This document shows, in pieces, positions 3,086 through 64,000 of a stretch of DNA of 64,000 nt. Each line of letters begins with the position of its first letter. Position 1 is the first letter of the stretch. The stretch lies in the NCBI RefSeq assembly GCF_031769215.1, contig NW_026782573.1, positions 434,001 through 498,000 on the forward strand, given 5' to 3'. This DNA comes from Ylistrum balloti (Eukaryota). The translations under genes were made by a program, and so were the position numbers. Under the pieces are notes generated by a model that worked only from the letters and a program-made list of their open reading frames with translations, was not told where the DNA came from and did not search any database.

Positions 3086-3273
3086 CTGAAGTGAAAATAA
3101 CAGTCAATGGAAACAGCATAAAGCAACTGGTTATCACTAATGTTACCCTAACTTATACAGAATATCTAATGTATAGAGACCGCGAACTATTCCAATATCT
3201 TCTACACAACTGACCTGACAAATGTGAATTGCTAAAAGTAACAAAAACATGCTATACAAGGGAGATAACTCAC

Positions 3274-3512
3274 TTGTTTGTTGTCCAGTGAATCCCCAGG
3301 GCTTGCCACAATTCTAGTTCTTTAGAAGTCAAGCAGTTAAGGAGGAGTTGTTTTGCCTCAGGAGAAAGAAGAGGGAAACGGGCGTGGTTGGCTAAATCAG
3401 CTCCTCCATGTATCGGGTCACGGCTTGCCTCAAAGATCAGACTGAGGGGTGTAAACAGGAAGTGAACCAGCTCTGGTGCATTAGGGTCATGAATATGTGC
3501 CTTCAGTTTGGC
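3274..3512 (-). CDS. EPS8: EPS8-family exon (conserved central region)
   Basis: [30 protein letters not shown]...ELELWQALGIHW matches EPS8 '[23 protein letters not shown]...RQLWMSLGGTW'. cag acceptor and gtgag donor. Confidence 0.95.
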
Positions 3513-3674
3513 CTGTAATAAAAAAAATAAGAAGTATATCAGTTTGTTTTCTAGAACCAGAGCTATAAATACTTTTGAGTGACATCTCACATAAGCTTTA
3601 ACCTTTCTATCATTGGTCAAACGTCTAATGATAATATACCAAAGGACTATTATTCTGAGTTTGTAAAGACTTAC

Positions 3675-3763
3675 CAACAAATTGAAGGCATATTTAAATT
3701 TCTGGAAAATGTCAACAAAGTCTTCTGCTGGTGGTGGTCTTGCTTTCATATTCAATAATCCTT
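3675..3763 (-). CDS. EPS8: EPS8-family exon
   Basis: EGLLNMKARPPPAEDFVDIFQKFKYAFNLL matches EPS8 '[30 protein letters not shown]'. tag acceptor and gtaag donor. Confidence 0.95.
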
Positions 3764-4058
3764 CTAAAAACACAAAGATAATTTTAACTAGGTCAGTTTT
3801 CTGTAGCAATAAGATACAATCATATTTTGGTTCTGGAGAAGATAAATTTGCAATTTCAATAACAAAGACTACTAGAGCTATTTATCACAAAGGTATACCA
3901 GAAATGAGCAATTGTTGTTCTTAAGTTTGACAATTATAATCTGTAGAGTGAAGTATTTAATATCTACTGACAGAAACTGATTATTCTAATACATGTAGTT
4001 ATCATTTCTTCATTCATTATTAAGAAAATCAAAAAAGAAAGATATTCTATGTTTATAC

Positions 4059-48999: not shown

Positions 49000-49830
49000 G
49001 GACTGCAGACCTACGAGAAGAGTGGAAGACAGGTCAATGTTATTTATAATGAAAAATGAAGACAGGATGCAATTCAGAGAAGAGAGGATGGCGATTGGGG
49101 TTGTAATTAGTATTAAAAATTATCTATCTAGAAGGATCAGATGTGTGATAACTGTTATAGAGAGTTTGTTGGGAGAAGAAGAATTGAGTGTGGGGTATCA
49201 GAGTTGGGGTGGGAGTTGGAACGGCTGTTAAAGGGTGTTTGTTGGGAGAAGAAGAATTGAGTGTGGGGTATCAGAGTTGGGGTGGGAGTTGGAACGGCTG
49301 TTATAGGATGTTTGTTGGGAGAAGAAGAATTGAGGGTGGGGTATCAGAGTTAGGGTGGGAGTTAAAATGGCTGTTATAGTGTGTTTGGCGGAAGGGGCTT
49401 ATATTGTATGACGGAATTAGAATGGAAGGTTGGAGGACTTTTTGTGGTTGATGAGCGAAGAGGGCTTGAGAGTAGGGTAAAGGTGTTTAGTATTATCTAT
49501 AGATAGGTGGTTGGGTTTTAGGATAGCCGTTATAGAGCATTAGGAGAAGAAAGGTTGAGAGCTGGTATAGGTAGTTTGTATTATATGTTGATATTAAGGT
49601 GGTAGTTGGGATGGCTGTTAGGAGGCTAGGAGAAGAGGGCTTGAGAGTGGCGTAGAGGTGGTCGGTAACACCTAAAGTTAGGAGAATGATAGTTGGAATG
49701 ACTGTTATAGGTGAAGTTAGGTCGAGGATGGGGTATATGTAGTTTGTGTTATCATAGGTAGTAGGATGGATGTTGGGATGTCTGTTATAGGTGTTGGGAG
49801 GAGAGAGCTTGTATGATGAGTGTCCTTTTT
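49000..49830. repeat. G-rich, C-poor 73-bp minisatellite with degenerate flanking copies
   Basis: Three near-identical units start at 49164, 49237 and 49310. The ctgttatag...ggagaag motif recurs to ~49800. Confidence 0.85.
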
Positions 49831-51200: not shown

Positions 51201-51742
51201 TCAAATACTTAAACATGTATTGACCAATGTGATTTTGATCATGAAAGTGGGTCAAGGTAATTTATCTGAACTAACTAGAGCGCCATTCAAGCATGCTTCA
51301 TGTCCATTACCATAACCAAGGGTTACGTTTAATATAGAATTCATATAAAAATGTTCATTTAAATTATGGAAACAACGTTGATGTTATCAGTATATTTCTT
51401 AATGTAAAATTTGTACTCTATATTCAACACACAGAGTATAAAGCTATGTTGAATTTCTCAAGTTGCCATACGGTTAGATTTACGACAGTCGGCCACTACC
51501 TTGTAGTCTGTCAGAGCAATTATCTAAGTTAGAAATGTAACACAGAGACAAGCTAAACCTGCGATGCAGTGCGTTTTATTTCCGAACTAGTTCACTCCGT
51601 CTTAGTTTTGAATCCGCCAGTCTGTATCGGATGTCGAAGGAGGAAGGTAAACTGAAATATATAGAGACATTTTATTATAATAAAGCTGGAATGTTAATTA
51701 AAAGGAAAGAAATTGAGTTCTTCAAAAACTATTTCAAATAAG

Positions 51743-51901: not shown

Positions 51902-52086
51902 TCATTTCAAGAATTTTCTGCATGTATCACAGCAGACGTTTCCGAAGTGAATCGAGGTACACATATCCTTTTTACTGCCTTTGAACATTGAGTAGACAAT
52001 TTGTCGACATCTGTTCGGAGATAATCTGTCTCCGTCACATGTCTCTTCTGTGCCCTCCTTGGGGTACTCACCTTTACCCAGGAACG
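51902..52086 (-). CDS. Orphan secreted precursor, exon 5 (PLAC-like domain 4)
   Basis: ccag acceptor, phase 1. FLGKGEYPKEGTEETCDGDRLSPNRCRQIVYSMFKGSKKDMCTSIHFGNVCCDTCRKFLK*. Confidence 0.85.
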
Positions 52087-52164
52087 CTGGTGACGTCAAA
52101 AATAGATATGAATAAAAATAACATTAACCAGTTAATTTTATATAAAACTTAACGTATTTTCATA

Positions 52165-52444
52165 ACTGTAAATCACTTATATTACCAATGGGATTTATTT
52201 TCGCGGAAAGAGTCGATCACTAATTCACGTCACTCGTAATCATTTCTTTGAAATTAACTCTAGCATCCATTTTGTTACCGTTACTGATATCGGCGTCTTT
52301 CACAATCCAGTTCTCTAATAGCTCATCATTCGCAAATGTAAAGCAATTTCTTTATCAGCGATCGCGAAATTGTGAATTCGCGAATATGTTTGATGAGGTA
52401 TGATCGCGAAATAAAGTTTTCGCGAAATATAAGTTATTGACACT
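52165..52444. mobile_element. MITE with ACTGTAAATCACTTATATT-like TIRs and TCGCGAA-rich body
   Basis: Termini are 16/19 identical as inverted repeats. Several CGCGAA/TCGCG motifs inside. Lies in the last intron of the PLAC-like gene. Confidence 0.6.
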
Positions 52445-53071
52445 AGCACATGATTTCACTAATAACCTGTGATGATGTAAGTAAAGAGTATGAATATTGT
52501 ACAAAAGATACACAAGTGAATAACACTTGTTTTATAATTCAGAGTGGGATGCAGTACAGCCAAACACTAAATCAAACTGCATCATACAGCTGTTTCGTCC
52601 TTCTAGGAGTCGTCAGTGATGCTAAGGGCCTACAGAAAGATATTTATATAAGCTTACAACAATCCCTCATTCATAATGTTTCAAATGAATATTTTTGAAA
52701 TAAAGAATATGACAACATAATATCTGTTTATAATGACGACAAAACCACACGTTACATCATACAAGCTATAATTCGACAGCCAAATTAAACACCTAAACGC
52801 GTAATGCATAAGTAATATGATGAGATATTTCCTGTTTTATAACAAATGACGCGGGAAAAAAATCAAGCCATTATCTATGGCAAATTATCAGAATATAAAA
52901 AATGGATAGACGGAAGATATGTTGAAGATATAAACACTGACTAAATGATTTAAAATATTAATTTCAGAGTAATATGGACAACTTTGTCCACCTAAACACG
53001 AGGAAACTAAGAAACGTCAACAATATCAGTGTTTTACTAATAGTTATCTATGGAAAATTCAACATATTTAC

Positions 53072-53524
53072 CAAGGTCTCTCCGTTTCCGATTGTCTACT
53101 CTGTTCGCTGAAGCAGAGGCACAGAACCGACAACAAGAAATCACATTATGTGGGTTAGAACAGAAAATGTGGGGCATTCCACCATGTTTGTAATATGGAC
53201 TCCTCATCATCATTCGTCGGCAATTGTCTGCGCCAATTCTGTCCTCACACATATTTTCACTTTCGGCGTCACGCCTCTTACGAAGGTGAGATTCGGCCAT
53301 GTTTCCAGCTTTCGTCAAACTGAATGGTGCAGATTTCATTCGAAGGTAATCGTTTTTATCTTTCTTATCTCCGTAACCATCGTTACCTTTTATAATATTG
53401 TTTATGAAATCGCCAAAATCACCGTCCTCTTTTCCTCGTTTTCCGTCGTTGTTATCAAAGCCATCCAGAAAATTGTATATAGAATCATAAAATTTGTCAT
53501 CATCTTGATCGCCTTGGCCGTAGC
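53072..53524 (-). CDS. Orphan secreted precursor, exon 4 (acidic spacer, GKR, RKRR, PLAC-like domain 3, RKRR)
   Basis: ttttcag acceptor and g|gtaaat donor. 453 nt fully open: YGQGDQDDDKFYDSIYNFLDGFDNNDGKRGKEDGDF...HLRKRRDAESENMCEDRIGADNC...CSNPHNVISCCRFC...RKRRDL. Confidence 0.88.
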
Positions 53525-54281
53525 CTGAAAATGGAGATGAATTTCTAACACAATTGTACTAACGCAAGAAATCATTGGGATGAATTATTTTTCGGGAGAG
53601 ATGACTTACAACAATACAATGAACTGATGAAACTGACTTGTTGCAGAGATTTTGAACTTACACATAATACAATGCCTTTCAGTGTATATATAAACAAGAT
53701 ACTGCAATTAATCTAAGACACTTCGTAAAATGCCATTTTCGTCAACATACTCACCCCCAAAGTTGTCAAGGATATTTTGCATTTTCTTGTAAGGATGTTT
53801 CACTGAAAGTGCATAGACAAAAGACTATGAACAATTATTACAGATATATCGTTTCTATGTGACACTTCTACTATCAGTATGTGTATATGTTTGTATTCGA
53901 CTTATTGTACTATCAATCTTTAACTAACACGTGTTTTGTGTATCTTTAGTAATTAAATTAGTGTTTCTTTAATTCGTATAAATCGCATGTCTCACATTCA
54001 TCAATATATATATGTATATCATTTCTACATTTTTAATCTATTTTAATCTTCAACATAAAAATAAAACACAGTTTCAAAATATCAATATAAAGTGCAACAA
54101 TAAAAGTCGGTGTGAAGTTTATAACCCATTTGGTTATGCTCAAGTCCAATTTTCCGTTGAACTGACATGGGTCCAATTCAGTAAAAGACTCGGCGAATGT
54201 TTACTTATCTCAATATTGCACAAACCGTAAGGTAAGAAAATGAATTTAAAGCAATCGTTCTTTCTGAGGCTATATACCCAC

Positions 54282-54482
54282 TCCATTCATCCATGACGAG
54301 ACTGCTCCAATCTTTTCCCATTCCATATTTGCAGAACCTGCAGCACATTCCCGCGTACTTTTCATCTTTACACATAGCCTTAGTGTTTTTGCCATATGCC
54401 TTATCACGAATATCCATACATTGCGAGTACTTCATTGTGTCCTTACAATCAACCGTCAAGTACATAAACTTTGTAGCCATAT
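54282..54482 (-). CDS. Orphan secreted precursor, exon 3 (PLAC-like domain 2)
   Basis: tttttcag acceptor. MATKFMYLTVDCKDTMKYSQCMDIRDKAYGKNTKAMCKDEKYAGMCCRFCKYG...DEW. The donor a|gtgggt was chosen for phase-1 compatibility and is less certain. Confidence 0.8.
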
Positions 54483-54873
54483 CTGAAAAATAAATACGTT
54501 CTGAACATAATACTCATCGGAGTTCTTGTTCTAAATGATAATATGAAATATCACAAGCTGTCATGGTACAGAAAAAAATAGACCACGCCAATTTCGGGCA
54601 ATGATAGAACAGCATGTGGCATTTGTTCTTTGACAATTTTCTTGCATCAATAACCATCAAACCATCTAATATGTACTGATCAATTCACGCAAAGACATGG
54701 CCAGTTTTCATCAAATTTTCACTTCTTCATTAGATGGATAAATGATTTTTTTATGCAAGTTTAAAAAAATGAAATGACTTCATTCAGTAGTAACATTGAT
54801 AGCTATTGTTTAAAACATGGACTTAACAACGTTAGGGTTTAAATTCAACGAAAAAAAACCCATTTATTCTTAC

Positions 54874-55137
54874 CTATGATATCGTTGTTGTAGGGGTTAC
54901 TATTGTCACAAGTGAGTTTGTTGAGGCAAAATGCGCAACATTCATCCACAGTCTTGTATCCGAAACACATGTCGTAAATATTATCTTTATATCTGTTTTT
55001 AAGAATTCTTGCGCATTTCTTTTCGCTGAAATTGTTCTTGCAGTCCTTCGGTTTTGGCATCAGATCAACACACATTGTATCTATAATAGCACATATATCA
55101 TTATCGTCATCAATAGAGCGAGGTTTAATATCAACAA
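54874..55137 (-). CDS. Orphan secreted precursor, exon 2 (PLAC-like domain 1)
   Basis: tag acceptor and g|gtaag donor. VDIKPRSIDDDNDICAIIDTMCVDLMPKPKDCKNNFSEKKCARILKNRYKDNIYDMCFGYKTVDECCAFCLNKLTCDNSNPYNNDII. Confidence 0.88.
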
Positions 55138-55394
55138 CTATACCACAGAGATAACAAAATACAATGGAGCAAAGAGTATTATTCTATTCAATTTGTAGTA
55201 TTTCAAAGCAGCAAATGTTTTGTAACTTCATAACAGGCATGGTAATATCTAATAACATTTTTAAAATAATTAATGCGAACATTATTGAAGCAATTTTCAC
55301 TAATTAATCCAGTTATCATTAAATAGTCAGATTAATGTATCAAAGTCAAAATAATGTTTCATTAGTCATAACCTATAAATGAACAAATCATATC

Positions 55395-55905
55395 TAATCC
55401 AGTCAATGCTTAATCGATAACCACTTATCCAGTCATCATTAGTGTGGTTACCAATAAACGGGTTATCAGTAACCGAGTTACCACCAATCCCGTTAATCCA
55501 GTCAATGCTTAATCGATAACCACTTATCCAGTCACCATTAGTGTGGTTACCAATAAACCGGTTATCAATAACCGAGTTACCACCAATCCCGTTAATCCAG
55601 TCAATGCTTAATCGATAACCACTTATCCAGTCACCATTAGTGTGGTTACCAATAAACCGGTTATCAATAACCGAGTTACCACCAAACCTGTTAATCCAGT
55701 CAACACTTAACAGCTACCACTTATCCAGTCACCATTAGTGTGGTTACCAATAAACGGGTTATCAGTAACCGAGTTACCACCAAACCCGTTAATCCAGTCA
55801 CCATTAGTGTGGTTACCAATAAACCGGTTATCAATAACCGATTCACCACCAAAACCGTTAATCCAGTCACCACTTAACAACTACCACTAATCCCGTTAAC
55901 CAATC
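55395..55905. repeat. 99-bp tandem repeat, ~5 copies, in intron 1 of the PLAC-like gene
   Basis: taatccagtc recurs at 55395, 55494, 55593, 55692 and 55790. The last unit is internally deleted. Confidence 0.95.
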
Positions 55906-56643
55906 CAAGTCAGGTCAAACTGTTCAGTTAGCGTTTAACTGGTTATTGTTAATAATCCAGTTTACACGAACCAATTACCACATACCAAAACATATTTTTA
56001 AAAAAATATACATTCAAACCGGTGACCTATTCTTCAGGCACAATTTCTCGGAAACTTTGTCCTCTTAACTAAACTAATTACTTCGTATCAAATCAGTTAT
56101 AGCGGTAAAAATGTATGCGGTCATACCCAAACCGAATATTTATCATCCTGTCACAATTTTGGTGGTAACTATTTATTTGGCTGCAAACCAAACTAATTAT
56201 TTATTATCCAGTATCAATTATATTGGGATCTATTTATGCGGCCAAACCCGTCAATCTTTTAACCTTAATCTTTTAGACCTTAATCATTATCGTTTTACAG
56301 TCGTACTGGTAAATATTGTTTTGATCTCAACTAACCCACTCACGCATGGGTAGAAGTCTTAGAGTATAAGCAATTTTGACTTGATTTTGAGAATCTCTTT
56401 TATAAGTGCTTCATTAATGCCCGATTCGATGCCCAACGAAACATTTGTTGATATATAATGCCAATGTTAGGATTTAAAACTAGTTGCGTGTATTGGAATA
56501 AACATGTAATTTTACTCGCTTAAATATGATCTATCATCAAAGATGTGATGAAACATTTAAAAACCATATGTACTTCATTCAAAACCACTCTAGATGTACA
56601 CCATAGACCATATTTGTTAAAAGTATGAAAATCTTATTTTTAC

Positions 56644-56719
56644 CTGTGATGTAACCAGATATCAGCAACAGCATAAAAACCCACACAGTTCCGGCCATTT
56701 CTTTGGTGTGTGGATCCAT
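56644..56719 (-). CDS. Orphan secreted precursor, exon 1 (signal peptide)
   Basis: Good Kozak context (acgccATGG). MDPHTKEMAGTVWVFMLLLISGYIT has a hydrophobic core. g|gtaaaa phase-1 donor. Confidence 0.82.
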
Positions 56720-56779: not shown

Positions 56780-56816
56780 TTGCAACTGCCTTAGGGTATC
56801 TGTGTCGTTATATAGA
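56780..56816 (-). promoter_or_regulatory. TATA box plus initiator-like core promoter of the PLAC-like precursor gene
   Basis: TATATAA at 56815-56809, with an Inr-like GCAGTT about 28 nt downstream (A at 56787), ~70 nt before the ATG. Confidence 0.55.
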
Positions 56817-59825: not shown

Positions 59826-60301
59826 TCAATCACTAGAAAATCCTTTCATCCAACGACCTTCGAAATTGTTCAGCTTTGCTCTTGTCCTTGTCCTAATGAC
59901 GGCGTCTTTTATGCGAGCAGAAGGTTTCCTTGATTTTCCCGCAGTATTTCGAGACGGTTTTGAGGTGGTCTTTACTTTTCTTGGGATGACCTTTTTAGTT
60001 GGTTTGGCAACATGACATCGCTTTGATCGCTTAATTGAGCATTTATGACACCGTTTACCGCCTCTTAAAAGAACAATAGTGAGGTAACGACACGACTTAG
60101 GCGTGGCAACCGGACATTGTAACTTCAGACAGGAAGTGATACGCTTGGACGGAACAATTCTTGTTCGATGGATTGTACTAGTTTCCGTCGGTCGTTTGAC
60201 TTTGTGTGAAGAGGCGTTTCCTTTCGTGACAGGTTTGACACTGGAAATAACTTTTCGAATTCTGCTTTTTGAGGAAACAGAGGCTCTGCCGGGAGTTATA
60301 C
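59826..60301 (-). CDS. Orphan basic secreted protein, terminal exon (K/R/S/T-rich with a 6-Cys module)
   Basis: tttttgtag acceptor, phase 1. 158-codon open frame missing from the ORF track: ITPGRASVSSKSRIRKV...CLKLQCPVATPKSCRYLTIVLLRGGKRCHKCSIKRSKRC...RTRTRAKLNNFEGRWMKGFSSD*. Confidence 0.8.
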
Positions 60302-60930
60302 CTACAAAAACAAAAACAAAAACTGGTGAAGTTTTTTATGCATATTTAGACTTTTGATTGCATAATATAATATACACATTAAACAGAATTTTCCTTTTCA
60401 AGATGTTCTAAATATCAACATTAAATTTGATGTTTATGTCCAGGACTGGATCTAAAAAATTCAATACGGACTAAGATTGTATAACATTAAAATAGTAAAC
60501 AATTGTGGTTGTGATGATTGCATCATCGCTATTGATCAGATTTATTATTGTACTTTAATATTGATTCACTCACTGTCGATACACTCAATATACACAGCAT
60601 TTACAAATTTTCATGAAATTACATTTTCTGAGGACTTGTTCAAGGTCTTGACGACATGTAGGAACACAAGGTCTTACGTTTTTTTCAAATGATGGATTGG
60701 TGTGCGAACATTTTTACCTTCAATAAATCAGATAAATACGTTTCCGGCTTCACTGAATAATAACGAAAATCGATTATTTCACATTACCCGATATTATATC
60801 CATTCAATAATGAAAACATATATATATAGTCTTGTTTCTATGATGTTGACAGTTGACTTCTTATAGTCATTATAGAAATCATTTTTTACGTTTTATATAA
60901 CAGCTTTATAATGCAAAGCCAGTGTAATAC

Positions 60931-61047
60931 TGAGTATTGTTTTATGCATTTTTAACAACGCCATCTTATTTGTGTTCTTCGCATGAATGAAACTACTGTA
61001 TGATTTCTGTTTTTTCATTGCCCTGCTTCTAAGCTTGTCATCATCCG
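60931..61047 (-). CDS. Possible internal exon of the basic secreted protein
   Basis: aag acceptor after a pyrimidine tract. K-rich DDDKLRSRAMKKQKSYSSFIHAKNTNKMALLKMHKTIL, phase 1-1. The donor gtatta is weak. Confidence 0.3.
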
Positions 61048-63659
61048 CTTTCAGGACAAAAAGAAAATACACTATTGCGATACACATACAACGTCAAATA
61101 TTTGAAAGGCACATCATTGACAGGAAACACGAAACCACTGTCATATAGGTAATCAAAGTTGACATTAACAACGACTAAACATGGAAGTGACTGTGTTCTG
61201 CATGACGTGTCATCATGAGAATTAGTTTTAACCAATGAGCGGCGGTGTTACATTTCGCCTACAGACAACGTGTCCATGTAAGCTGTCAAGTTACAGTAAA
61301 GTCTTTAGTCAAGACAACATTAAAATTGTGTATTAGTTTGAACTGTGGAATTTGATATCTTTATAAACATGCCAATACAAATGAAACCAGGAATAAAATA
61401 AAATAAATAATTCTATCAAATATGTCATGACATGACATCATTAACTTTTTATTTCTGATTAAATAAAGTTCTATAATCAAAATATATTTTGAATCATGTT
61501 TATAATAGGTATTACTTGTGCAGATTATTTATATGAATAAAGACATAATTTTTATATTTGATTGTTTTTTTTCGATCACTTTTGATTTTCTTCATCGCCT
61601 ACTAGGCTTTAAAATTTAGGCATTTAGTATCACTGACGAGTCATCGAAGGATTGGTATAATGCAATTTAATTGTTTGTTTTGCTCTAAAGTATCTAACTC
61701 TAAAATATTAAAAGGTGCTGTACATTTGTGTGCTTTGGTGCAATCTCTATCATCATGGTATGTAAATATATACATATGTATATCGATGAACGAAGGACAG
61801 TTTTAATAAATCACTGTAGTGGTATATATATATATATCCTGTCTGATATTAAGCTGATGAGTGGGCTGTGCTGTATATTTGCTTCGGTTATCTATATTTT
61901 CGGACATTGATATACAACATAGGTCTCTCATAAATGTATTGCTTATCTATTATCCCGAGTGTTGTGTTTAACACATCCAACTTGTCGACAGCGACCAAGC
62001 TGACTGTCGCCATCTCGTCTATGTGTCGTATGGTATCAAAGCGAATAGTTGTCAATTTTACTCTCGAACAGGTCATAGACAATATATATATAGCAATCAC
62101 CCAGCAATACCGTAATCAAAAGATCTACATCTCACATCTATTCTCAACCAATGAGATGCAAGATACTTTAGGGCATGTAATAAATATTTGGCAACTGTCG
62201 AATTAGTGGACCATCGATTTCTTCTGTGAAGTTCAATTAAAAACCGAAAAGAAAAATAATATTAGTTTCATCTGTGACAAAAACAAACATTAATATGACA
62301 AGTAACTGATCACATATCTATATCTAAATTTGTGGTTGTATATCAATAATTTTTCCATAATACGTGTCGCTACTCATCACAATTATGGTATTGTTTGCCT
62401 ATTTGATGGGCACTTATTTCGTTAACTGGTCATGCGTTTCTCCTTGCTTCGCAGCGCTTAGACATCGTGATCTTTACATTGTTTTCTTCCCATAAAATGA
62501 TCATTACTGTTGCGTATATCACCGATAAAGGCTCATTGTTTTTTGTAGTAATTGTCATCTATCAGTATTATTATATTTTTCAAAACTTTCTGGATGTGGG
62601 TGCCCAGGCCCCAATTGCTAAAAGGTTGATTAGAGTTAATAAGTGTTGAGACATTTTACCTATCTCAACGAATCTAATACTGTAAAATGTTGAAAAATAT
62701 TTGTTTTCTACTAATCTGAATTTTTCACTAACCATCTATTCACTCTAACCATGTGTCGAGCATCTGGGTCCTGAATGACTGTTCTCTCGAATCAAATTAT
62801 ATAGTAATTATCCGGGTGGATATTTGAAGTTATATCAAATCAATAAAGATTGCGATATTTATTATTTTATTTTATGTCACAAGACAAATCAGAAACATGT
62901 TCAAATGACAATGTTTAATAGATGTTATCAAACCGCCCATGAACTGCCTCTTATAAAACAAATCTGTTAAAATACAGATTGAAAACTTACAATTACTTGG
63001 ATCAATTGTTTTGAAGACGAAGACCTTTAGTATCTACACTGTTTGCGCATTACTCTTTAGTCATTAATTATTTAATTAAACGAAGCTTAGTCATTCAATA
63101 ACATCACGGTGTAAAATTACTGCTGATATGAACTCCTTCCTCTTAAAACCATCTAAAAGACATAATCAAAACTGAAATAATAAATATGTATACAGAATAT
63201 TTAGACGCCTGACACTAAATTGTACTCAATTCAGATTTCATAAAAAAACAAGTAAAACTGAAAACAATTAAATTGACTAATAAACAAGGTGAAGGGAGAA
63301 TACGAAGGAGAACTTAAAGGAAACAATATAAGCGAGAGGCACTTGTTTATTACAGAAAATACTCAAAACATGCAAACTCCGACCTGAAGTCAATAAGACT
63401 ACAGTAGTAGGAACTGATGGTTCAATTATAGCAATAAAGCGAAAACATGCATCGAAAACAAGTCAATTTCTCTGTTACAAAAATCGTTCAAGCACCAAAA
63501 TATGATATCCGTCACGACACAGCTGACAGCGAAACCGGGAAAAAAAATTAAAATTTCAATGATTTCACAAAGAAGATAATTAAATCTTCATGTTTCTTAG
63601 AAATCTGGTTATTCAGACTGCCGGAATATTCTAGTTAAATTATTGTGGGGTTACCTTAC

Positions 63660-63747
63660 CTTGACAATACGGTTGGTACAATGTCAGCACAATAAACACT
63701 ATCACCATCAGTCGACATCCACCAGACACAACTCGGAAGTAATCCAT
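63660..63747 (-). CDS. Orphan basic secreted protein, signal-peptide exon
   Basis: MDYFRVVSGGCRLMVIVFIVLTLYQPYCQ with a strong caag|gtaagg phase-1 donor, compatible with the 60301 acceptor. The linkage is inferred. Confidence 0.68.
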
Positions 63748-64000
63748 GTTTATAGTTATCAATATATCAGTTTGTTCAAATTGAGATATTGAAATTACGG
63801 AATCCCGAATCTAGCTTTAGAAGTCACAATTTAGATCTGGAAAGAAATCGAGGTGATGTGGTGTTTTATTTGCTTGTCAACGTCATTCTGCGTCATAAGT
63901 GATGCTCCCTAGTTGGCGGTGTATCAAAGCGATGTTCATATTTCAACAGTCCACACTGAGACTATTCTTTCTCTATGGTCGGCTTATTAGTAGTAGGAGC

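Follow-up and report, generated by a model that had tools for sequence, protein, structure and literature searches.

LOC132560201 is a gene of the scallop Ylistrum balloti, located on the minus strand at positions 56719-51902 of the window (the 64-kb stretch of contig NW_026782573.1 that was analysed, to which positions refer unless stated otherwise), and its RefSeq name is "uncharacterized protein". On balance, we favour the reading that it encodes a Pectinidae-restricted secreted precursor that would be cut by a furin- or proprotein convertase (PC)-type enzyme at two R-x-x-R motifs into predicted peptides. The furin consensus is R-x-K/R-R, with R-x-x-R as its minimal form. A preliminary description of this locus, made from the DNA letters, had placed RKRR followed by Asp at 53282-53271 and 53090-53079, and had predicted free peptides of 60 and 63 amino acids (aa). 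These proved exact, the predicted products being DAESENMC...NRVDN (60 aa) and DLAFLGKG...KFLK (63 aa). In five species, as well as in a duplicated cassette of Argopecten, the Arg residues at P4 and P1 were invariant at both sites, while P2, P3 and the flanking linker varied. R252, R255, R316 and R319 were among the few invariant columns of the five-species alignment, in which the adjoining linker was essentially unalignable. A conserved R-x-K/R-R or minimal R-x-x-R motif was thus present at both sites. Because P4 and P1 are fixed and P2 and P3 are free, the pattern is that expected from selection on a furin/PC site, and comparative conservation gives real support to convertase processing of LOC132560201. 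The convertase-processed precursor that had been proposed is borne out to this extent. An upstream GKR that had also been pointed out is present in Y. balloti, and was rejected as a conserved site, since the orthologues do not keep it.

The structure of the gene was examined by reading the minus strand from 57000 to 51700 and splicing the exons by script. LOC132560201 consists of six coding exons with AG/GT boundaries and introns that are all phase 1 (Table 1). The preliminary description had the start codon at 56719, the stop codon at 51904-51902, the strand and the intron phase right, but counted five exons, having missed the micro-exon at 53802-53755, and its length of about 392 aa does not hold. 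The five-exon chain without the micro-exon gives 373 aa, and the six-exon product is 389 aa from the first ATG (56719) or 382 aa from the second (56698). The second ATG is the start in RefSeq, and the orthologues align to it. From the second Met onward, the six-exon translation was identical, micro-exon included, to the RefSeq protein XP_060080837.1 (P0001 below; "uncharacterized protein LOC132560201", 382 aa), so that the gene is annotated yet unnamed. Our searches used the exon sequences together with this database copy. The micro-exon is also conserved in Pecten and Argopecten.

The N-terminus of the protein is hydrophobic, with a best 11-residue Kyte-Doolittle mean of 2.45, and this property is conserved in three species (2.45-3.38); the signal peptide proposed earlier stands as far as this hydrophobicity goes. 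The protein further contains four modules with the pattern C-x8/9-C-x15/19-C-x8-CC-x2-C, one per exon, whose six Cys columns are invariant among the four. When the window was scanned in six frames with a loosened Cys pattern (wider loop ranges), these four modules were the sole matches. Pattern and positions thus agree with the four six-Cys domains first described, except that module 1 has eight Cys in Y. balloti; module 1 of the orthologues has one extra, possibly unpaired Cys. Beyond the four modules there is no Pfam domain in LOC132560201, which is to say that the modules stand in tandem without a protease or any other domain. In the five-species alignment, the module-3 loop HxGMPHIFC-x-NPHN is invariant and the arm that follows site 2, LAF-x-GKGEYP, is conserved. 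The linker behaves differently: its composition is conserved, with Gly, Asp, Lys, Tyr and Asn making up most residues, but its sequence and length are not. It measures 102 aa in Ylistrum and about 320-340 aa in both Pecten and Argopecten, where repeats of the GKGDYGNKN type follow one another in runs.

We then examined what kind of module this is. Two families come into question, PLAC (PF08686) and ShKT (PF01549). PLAC is usually a silent C-terminal appendage on ADAMTS proteases, papilin and proprotein convertases; to our knowledge, it has no known function. Pfam searches with the Ylistrum exons and the full protein gave nothing at threshold, and no PLAC or ShK match at an expect value (E) of up to 10. 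The check by hidden Markov model (HMM) search that had been suggested for these two families therefore gave neither at threshold on the spliced protein. When the 18 modules of all species were scanned singly, 6 matched PLAC below threshold (best E 3.9e-4), making it the only recurrent Pfam family; the ShK HMM matched none of the isolated modules at E up to 10. The best whole-protein PLAC score, from Argopecten module 4, was 16.6 bits, against a gathering cut-off of 26.4 bits. Genome-wide scans found nine PLAC loci and 25 ShK loci in Y. balloti, none of them in LOC132560201. The nine canonical PLAC exons have the spacing C-x6-8-C-x8-C-x8-CC-x2-C, and the canonical ShK exons end in C-x3-C-x2-C. 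The C-x8-CC-x2-C half of the scallop modules is thus identical to that of PLAC, while their first two loops are x8-9 and x15-19 vs x6-8 and x8. An hhalign comparison with the PLAC exons of this genome gave 72% probability over the last 20 columns only; a global alignment to the same set paired all six Cys at low probability, and the comparison with the ShK set gave a probability below 1%. Language-model features of modules 3 and 4, on the other hand, were nearest to ShKT clusters, with values of 0.83-0.89, below the 0.9 level counted as evidence.

Structure gave a similarly divided picture. The AlphaFold2 models of modules 1 and 3 were helical, with a predicted local distance difference test score (pLDDT) of about 70. 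For module 4 (residues 320-382), the ESM Atlas model was nearest to ADAMTS, ADAMTS-like and PLAC clusters, with template modelling (TM) scores of 0.46-0.51; the mean pLDDT of the whole-protein model was 0.51. VIA-align placed the module-3 model on the ShKT peptides 7l2g (Z 2.3) and 6ckf (Z 2.1), in each case over 36 residues out of 39 and 36, respectively, at scores that unrelated chains also reached. The ShKT match was not repeated with the module-1 model, which gave one unrelated match, and a profile search against the sequences of the PDB gave 0 matches. Taking these results together, we regard the module as a long-looped domain of the PLAC/ShKT kind, closest to PLAC by sequence and not a demonstrable member of either family. 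The original "PLAC-like" thus keeps the recurrent PLAC matches, the local hhalign result and the Atlas model of module 4 (TM about 0.5) on its side, and has against it that the cut-off was never reached and that the language-model features favour ShKT.

The likeness to PLAC, a domain of ADAMTS, ADAMTS-like, papilin/lacunin and PACE4/PC5 proteins, lies in the six Cys, the C-x8-CC-x2-C ending and an often found C-x-D at the first Cys. Besides the much longer first two loops and the gathering score, the scallop protein differs in carrying four tandem copies without a protease, TSP1 or other domain, where PLAC is a single C-terminal copy, and in having copies flanked by predicted convertase sites. 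With ShKT, the scallop module shares that it is small, six-Cys, predicted to be secreted, helical in models and starts with C-x-D; it differs in its ending, CC-x2-C vs C-x3-C-x2-C, and in the lack of any ShK HMM match at the E limit given above. Prohormones and toxin or defence polyproteins that are processed by convertases resemble LOC132560201 in the signal-like N-terminus, the R-x-K/R-R at module boundaries and the predicted release of several peptides. The scallop protein differs from them in having sites that flank only two of its four modules, in having no amidation signals and in its long repetitive spacer. Genes for Cys-rich secreted proteins that are restricted to one lineage are frequent in molluscs. 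The nearest mollusc case described is that of the vampire snail Cumia reticulata, in which stand-alone "ShKL" secreted proteins with single or multiple ShKT domains have been reported as a lineage-specific innovation (PMC6409789). They are, like the scallop protein, stand-alone, multi-module, secreted and lineage-specific; furin and dibasic processing did not come up in a term search of the text of that report. We class LOC132560201 among cysteine-rich modular secreted precursors. Within the reach of our searches, no protein has been described that combines solely PLAC-like modules, in tandem, with conserved convertase sites. That the protein belongs to no described family had been suspected from the beginning, and this was supported: there was no Pfam match at threshold, all names were "uncharacterized", and a literature search by accession, sequence motif and keyword found no paper on LOC132560201 in the library searched.

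The distribution of the gene was narrow. A profile of the four modules was run against 1.84 billion representative proteins, and gave 6 matches at E up to 0.001, all of them scallop proteins or products of DNA contigs. The best was P0001 itself, followed by proteins of Pecten maximus (XP_033752652.1, 603 aa) and Mizuhopecten yessoensis (OWF37326.1, a 173-aa fragment), the remaining three being DNA-contig products. A word-indexed search added an orthologue of 618 aa from Argopecten irradians, and no further protein representative was retrieved with a profile built from the full-length alignment. Named homologues in these searches were thus confined to Pecten, Argopecten and Mizuhopecten; homologues are also present on two DNA contigs from other samples. 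The tblastn search for orthologues that had been proposed was fruitful, as the loci of P. maximus and A. irradians share the six-exon layout including the micro-exon. Judged from these sequences, the gene family has so far been seen only in Pectinidae.

A paralogue search of the 648-Mb Y. balloti genome found no second copy of LOC132560201. It returned a weak match, C411 (E 0.075), and, on a different contig, one unannotated exon that encodes this type of module. The unannotated exon (C144:724743-724883; L015:1501-1641; L061:8902-9093) encodes a module of the form C-x9-C-x14-C-x8-CC-x2-C that ends in CCLTCTGLL-stop, is followed by partial tandem copies of its own 3' end, and lies about 2.8 kb downstream of LOC132545411. 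We rejected the exon as a part of LOC132545411, whose RefSeq protein is encoded by a single large exon (291 aa, 100% identity). Possibly, it is a relic, or else the final exon of a gene that has not been annotated.

Two loci of other species showed rearrangements of the 3' half of the gene. At the A. irradians locus, the 3' cassette, which consists of the exon for the linker and module 3 and the exon for module 4, is tandemly duplicated (L062:12688-14112 vs L062:16519-18675), with both furin-type sites retained in each copy (RRRR, RKRR). The products called at this locus are of 500 and 618 aa; by coordinates, the proximal cassette supplies the end of the shorter product and the distal cassette that of the longer. 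In sequence, the cassettes look like alternative 3' ends giving variant peptide pairs. The other is a more distant relative on a Logan contig of run SRR27895283 (L021:148-780), in which the micro-exon is fused to the exon for the linker and module 3; this suggests intron loss. The linker of this relative is basic rather than acidic, and its sites 1 and 2 read RVWR and RKKR.

Constraint on the protein was examined between species and within Y. balloti. Pairwise nonsynonymous divergence (dN) between species was 0.13-0.33, with synonymous divergence (dS) saturated, and dN/dS was 0.07-0.36 where computable, in all four modules. On these sequence comparisons, the modules are under purifying selection. 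The sole public run with the locus, X1, covered introns and exons at an even depth of about 10x, with about 1-2% of letters differing; the even depth and the differences mark it as genomic DNA of another individual or haplotype. All six exons were covered by X1 contigs and all were open. Among the differences listed (about half of the total), the only insertion or deletion in the coding sequence was an in-frame deletion of 3 bp at window position 53200 in exon 4. It falls within the long module-3 loop (MMMRSPYYK), at the position of the one additional residue that sets Ylistrum apart from the other scallops. As for the single-nucleotide differences listed, both of the two in module 3 were synonymous, while all five in the linker and both of the two in exon 2 were non-synonymous.

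If our reading is right, the precursor would consist of a signal-like N-terminus, two six-Cys modules, the micro-exon segment, a Gly/Asp/Lys/Tyr/Asn-rich linker of variable length and two more modules, in this order. It would be secreted, a furin/PC-type convertase in the secretory pathway would cut it after the two invariant R-x-x-R motifs, and a carboxypeptidase would then trim the basic residues. Three products would result: modules 1 and 2 plus the linker in one N-terminal piece of about 27 kDa, module 3 as a peptide of 60 aa, and module 4 as one of 63 aa. We speculate that the freed peptides may act as extracellular ligands or modulators, by analogy with ShKT domains that bind channels or receptors, or as PLAC-like modules that bind proteases or the matrix. 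A bolder proposal, which we put forward only tentatively and think more doubtful than cleavage itself, is that scallops have turned a PLAC/ShKT-like module into convertase-released signalling peptides (a hormone, pheromone, or channel or receptor ligand), with the module-3 peptide as the main active product and the Argopecten cassette isoforms diversifying the peptide pair.

A number of observations weigh against the convertase-processed precursor. We infer the cleavage from motif conservation alone, and the only public run with the locus is genomic DNA. At site 1, one distant copy has the minimal R-V-W-R, and site 2 of Pecten reads R-K-L-R. Amidation signals and other classical neuropeptide hallmarks are absent from the precursor, and a repetitive linker as long as that of Pecten and Argopecten would be unusual as a prohormone spacer. 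As the predicted peptides are not strongly cationic, with isoelectric points of 7.0 and 8.3, a cationic antimicrobial-peptide design is unlikely. As for the kinship of the module, no module from any species reaches a Pfam cut-off, Foldseek searches against the PDB with both AlphaFold2 models (modules 1 and 3) found nothing, and most structure searches with these models, including Atlas shape searches, returned noise only and no PLAC match.

These points leave room for other readings. LOC132560201 may encode a structural or matrix protein of byssus, shell, ligament or mucus, in which the linker would be the working part, the Cys modules would serve as terminal knobs for cross-linking or anchoring, and cleavage at the basic sites, if any, would be a step of maturation comparable to that of the pearl-oyster nacre protein Pif, for which Kex2-like cleavage has been reported. 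The way in which the linker, rich in repeats of Gly, Asp, Lys, Tyr and Asn, keeps its composition but not its sequence or length would suit such a role, and the extra, possibly unpaired Cys in module 1 of the orthologues could form bonds between molecules. We nevertheless consider this rather doubtful, because the constrained parts are the modules and the R-x-x-R sites and not the linker, the linker of the distant copy P0004 is basic and composed quite differently, and our literature search found no shell or byssus paper citing the accessions or motifs. The matrix role and the release of peptides by a convertase are not mutually exclusive. It is less probable still that the protein remains intact, as do multi-ShKT or PLAC-bearing extracellular proteins, with the basic motifs kept for some other function, for example glycosaminoglycan binding. 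Secreted multi-ShKT proteins that undergo no processing have been described in molluscs (PMC6409789), and constraint is about equal across the four modules, both of which would agree with an uncleaved protein. What speaks for a convertase site over a patch of charge is that invariance falls exactly on the Arg residues at P4 and P1, with P2 and P3 free, and that both motifs lie precisely at module boundaries.

An artefact of the gene model, either chance open reading frames or the 3' part of a larger upstream gene, is close to refuted. X1, the only run covering the locus, was genomic DNA and gave no splice junctions, which is what can be said in favour of an artefact. Three scallop genomes, however, share the exon structure, frames and modules, on which purifying selection acts, and LOC132560201 has its own ATG and a signal-like N-terminus, both conserved in the orthologues. 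Moreover, the upstream neighbour at 59826-63753, on the same minus strand, corresponds exon by exon to its orthologue in Pecten, a gene of 187 aa that lies upstream of the LOC132560201 orthologue there; the gene pair is thus syntenic. Since this neighbour is separately annotated in Pecten, it counts against LOC132560201 being the tail of a larger gene.

The neighbour itself was rejected as a carrier of the same module, as the Cys pattern of the four modules was absent from that region in the six-frame scan. A trypsin gene, found downstream in Pecten and Argopecten, was not seen within the window. Of the introns of LOC132560201, the last one contains a very high-copy repeat at 52385-52778, probably a short transposable element. 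Over this repeat, the X1 contigs show many joints and loose ends, and their summed depth climbs to 7,000-160,000 from a level of about 10. Intron 1 contains a tandem repeat at 55395-55872 with a 99-bp unit (4.1 copies, 95% matches), and an overlapping entry with a 69-bp period represents the same array. Elsewhere in the window, there is a G-rich tandem repeat (73-bp unit, 3.2 copies) at 49152-49387, inside the 48-50 kb bin in which GC skew reaches up to 0.47. An exon for an EPS8 spectrin-like domain (PF22975, E 1.2e-34) at 3270-3809 on the minus strand confirms the EPS8 gene at the start of the window.

Table 1. Coordinates of the LOC132560201 gene model and associated sequence elements in the window
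Feature	Position	Strand	Remarks
TATATAA, candidate TATA box	56808..56814	-	about 90 nt upstream of first ATG; sequence reading only
Exon 1	56644..56719	-	in-frame ATGs at 56719 and 56698; hydrophobic, signal-peptide-like N-terminus; ends in phase 1, GTAAAA donor
Exon 2	54874..55080	-	phase 1-1; module 1, six-Cys core 55042-54926, with an extra Cys on either side in Y. balloti
Exon 3	54282..54482	-	phase 1-1; module 2, core 54447-54331
Micro-exon	53755..53802	-	48 nt, phase 1-1, TTTCAG acceptor, GTGAGT donor; encodes (M)KHPYKKMQNILDNFG
Exon 4	53072..53524	-	phase 1-1; Gly/Asp/Lys/Asn/Tyr-rich low-complexity linker, RKRR site 1, module 3 (core 53249-53121), RKRR site 2
Furin-type site 1, RKRR then D	53271..53282	-	variants RKRR, RKRR, RRRR (both Argopecten cassettes), RERR, RVWR
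Furin-type site 2, RKRR then D	53079..53090	-	variants RKRR, RKLR, RKRR (both Argopecten cassettes), RERR, RKKR
Exon 5	51902..52086	-	conserved arm LAF-x-GKGEYP, module 4 (core 52039-51920), TGA stop 51904-51902
AATAAA, candidate poly(A) signal	51733..51738	-	about 165 nt past the stop; sequence reading only

A scallop gene that consists of PLAC/ShKT-like modules only, with conserved convertase sites at two of the boundaries, represents a simple and testable case in which this kind of module may act as a free peptide. Should the peptides exist, they would provide defined candidates of 60 and 63 aa for studies on signalling and defence in bivalves, and a handle on what the PLAC-type fold binds. 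If the repetitive linker is instead the functional part, LOC132560201 would be a candidate biomaterial protein, with a linker that is longer in some scallop species than in others.

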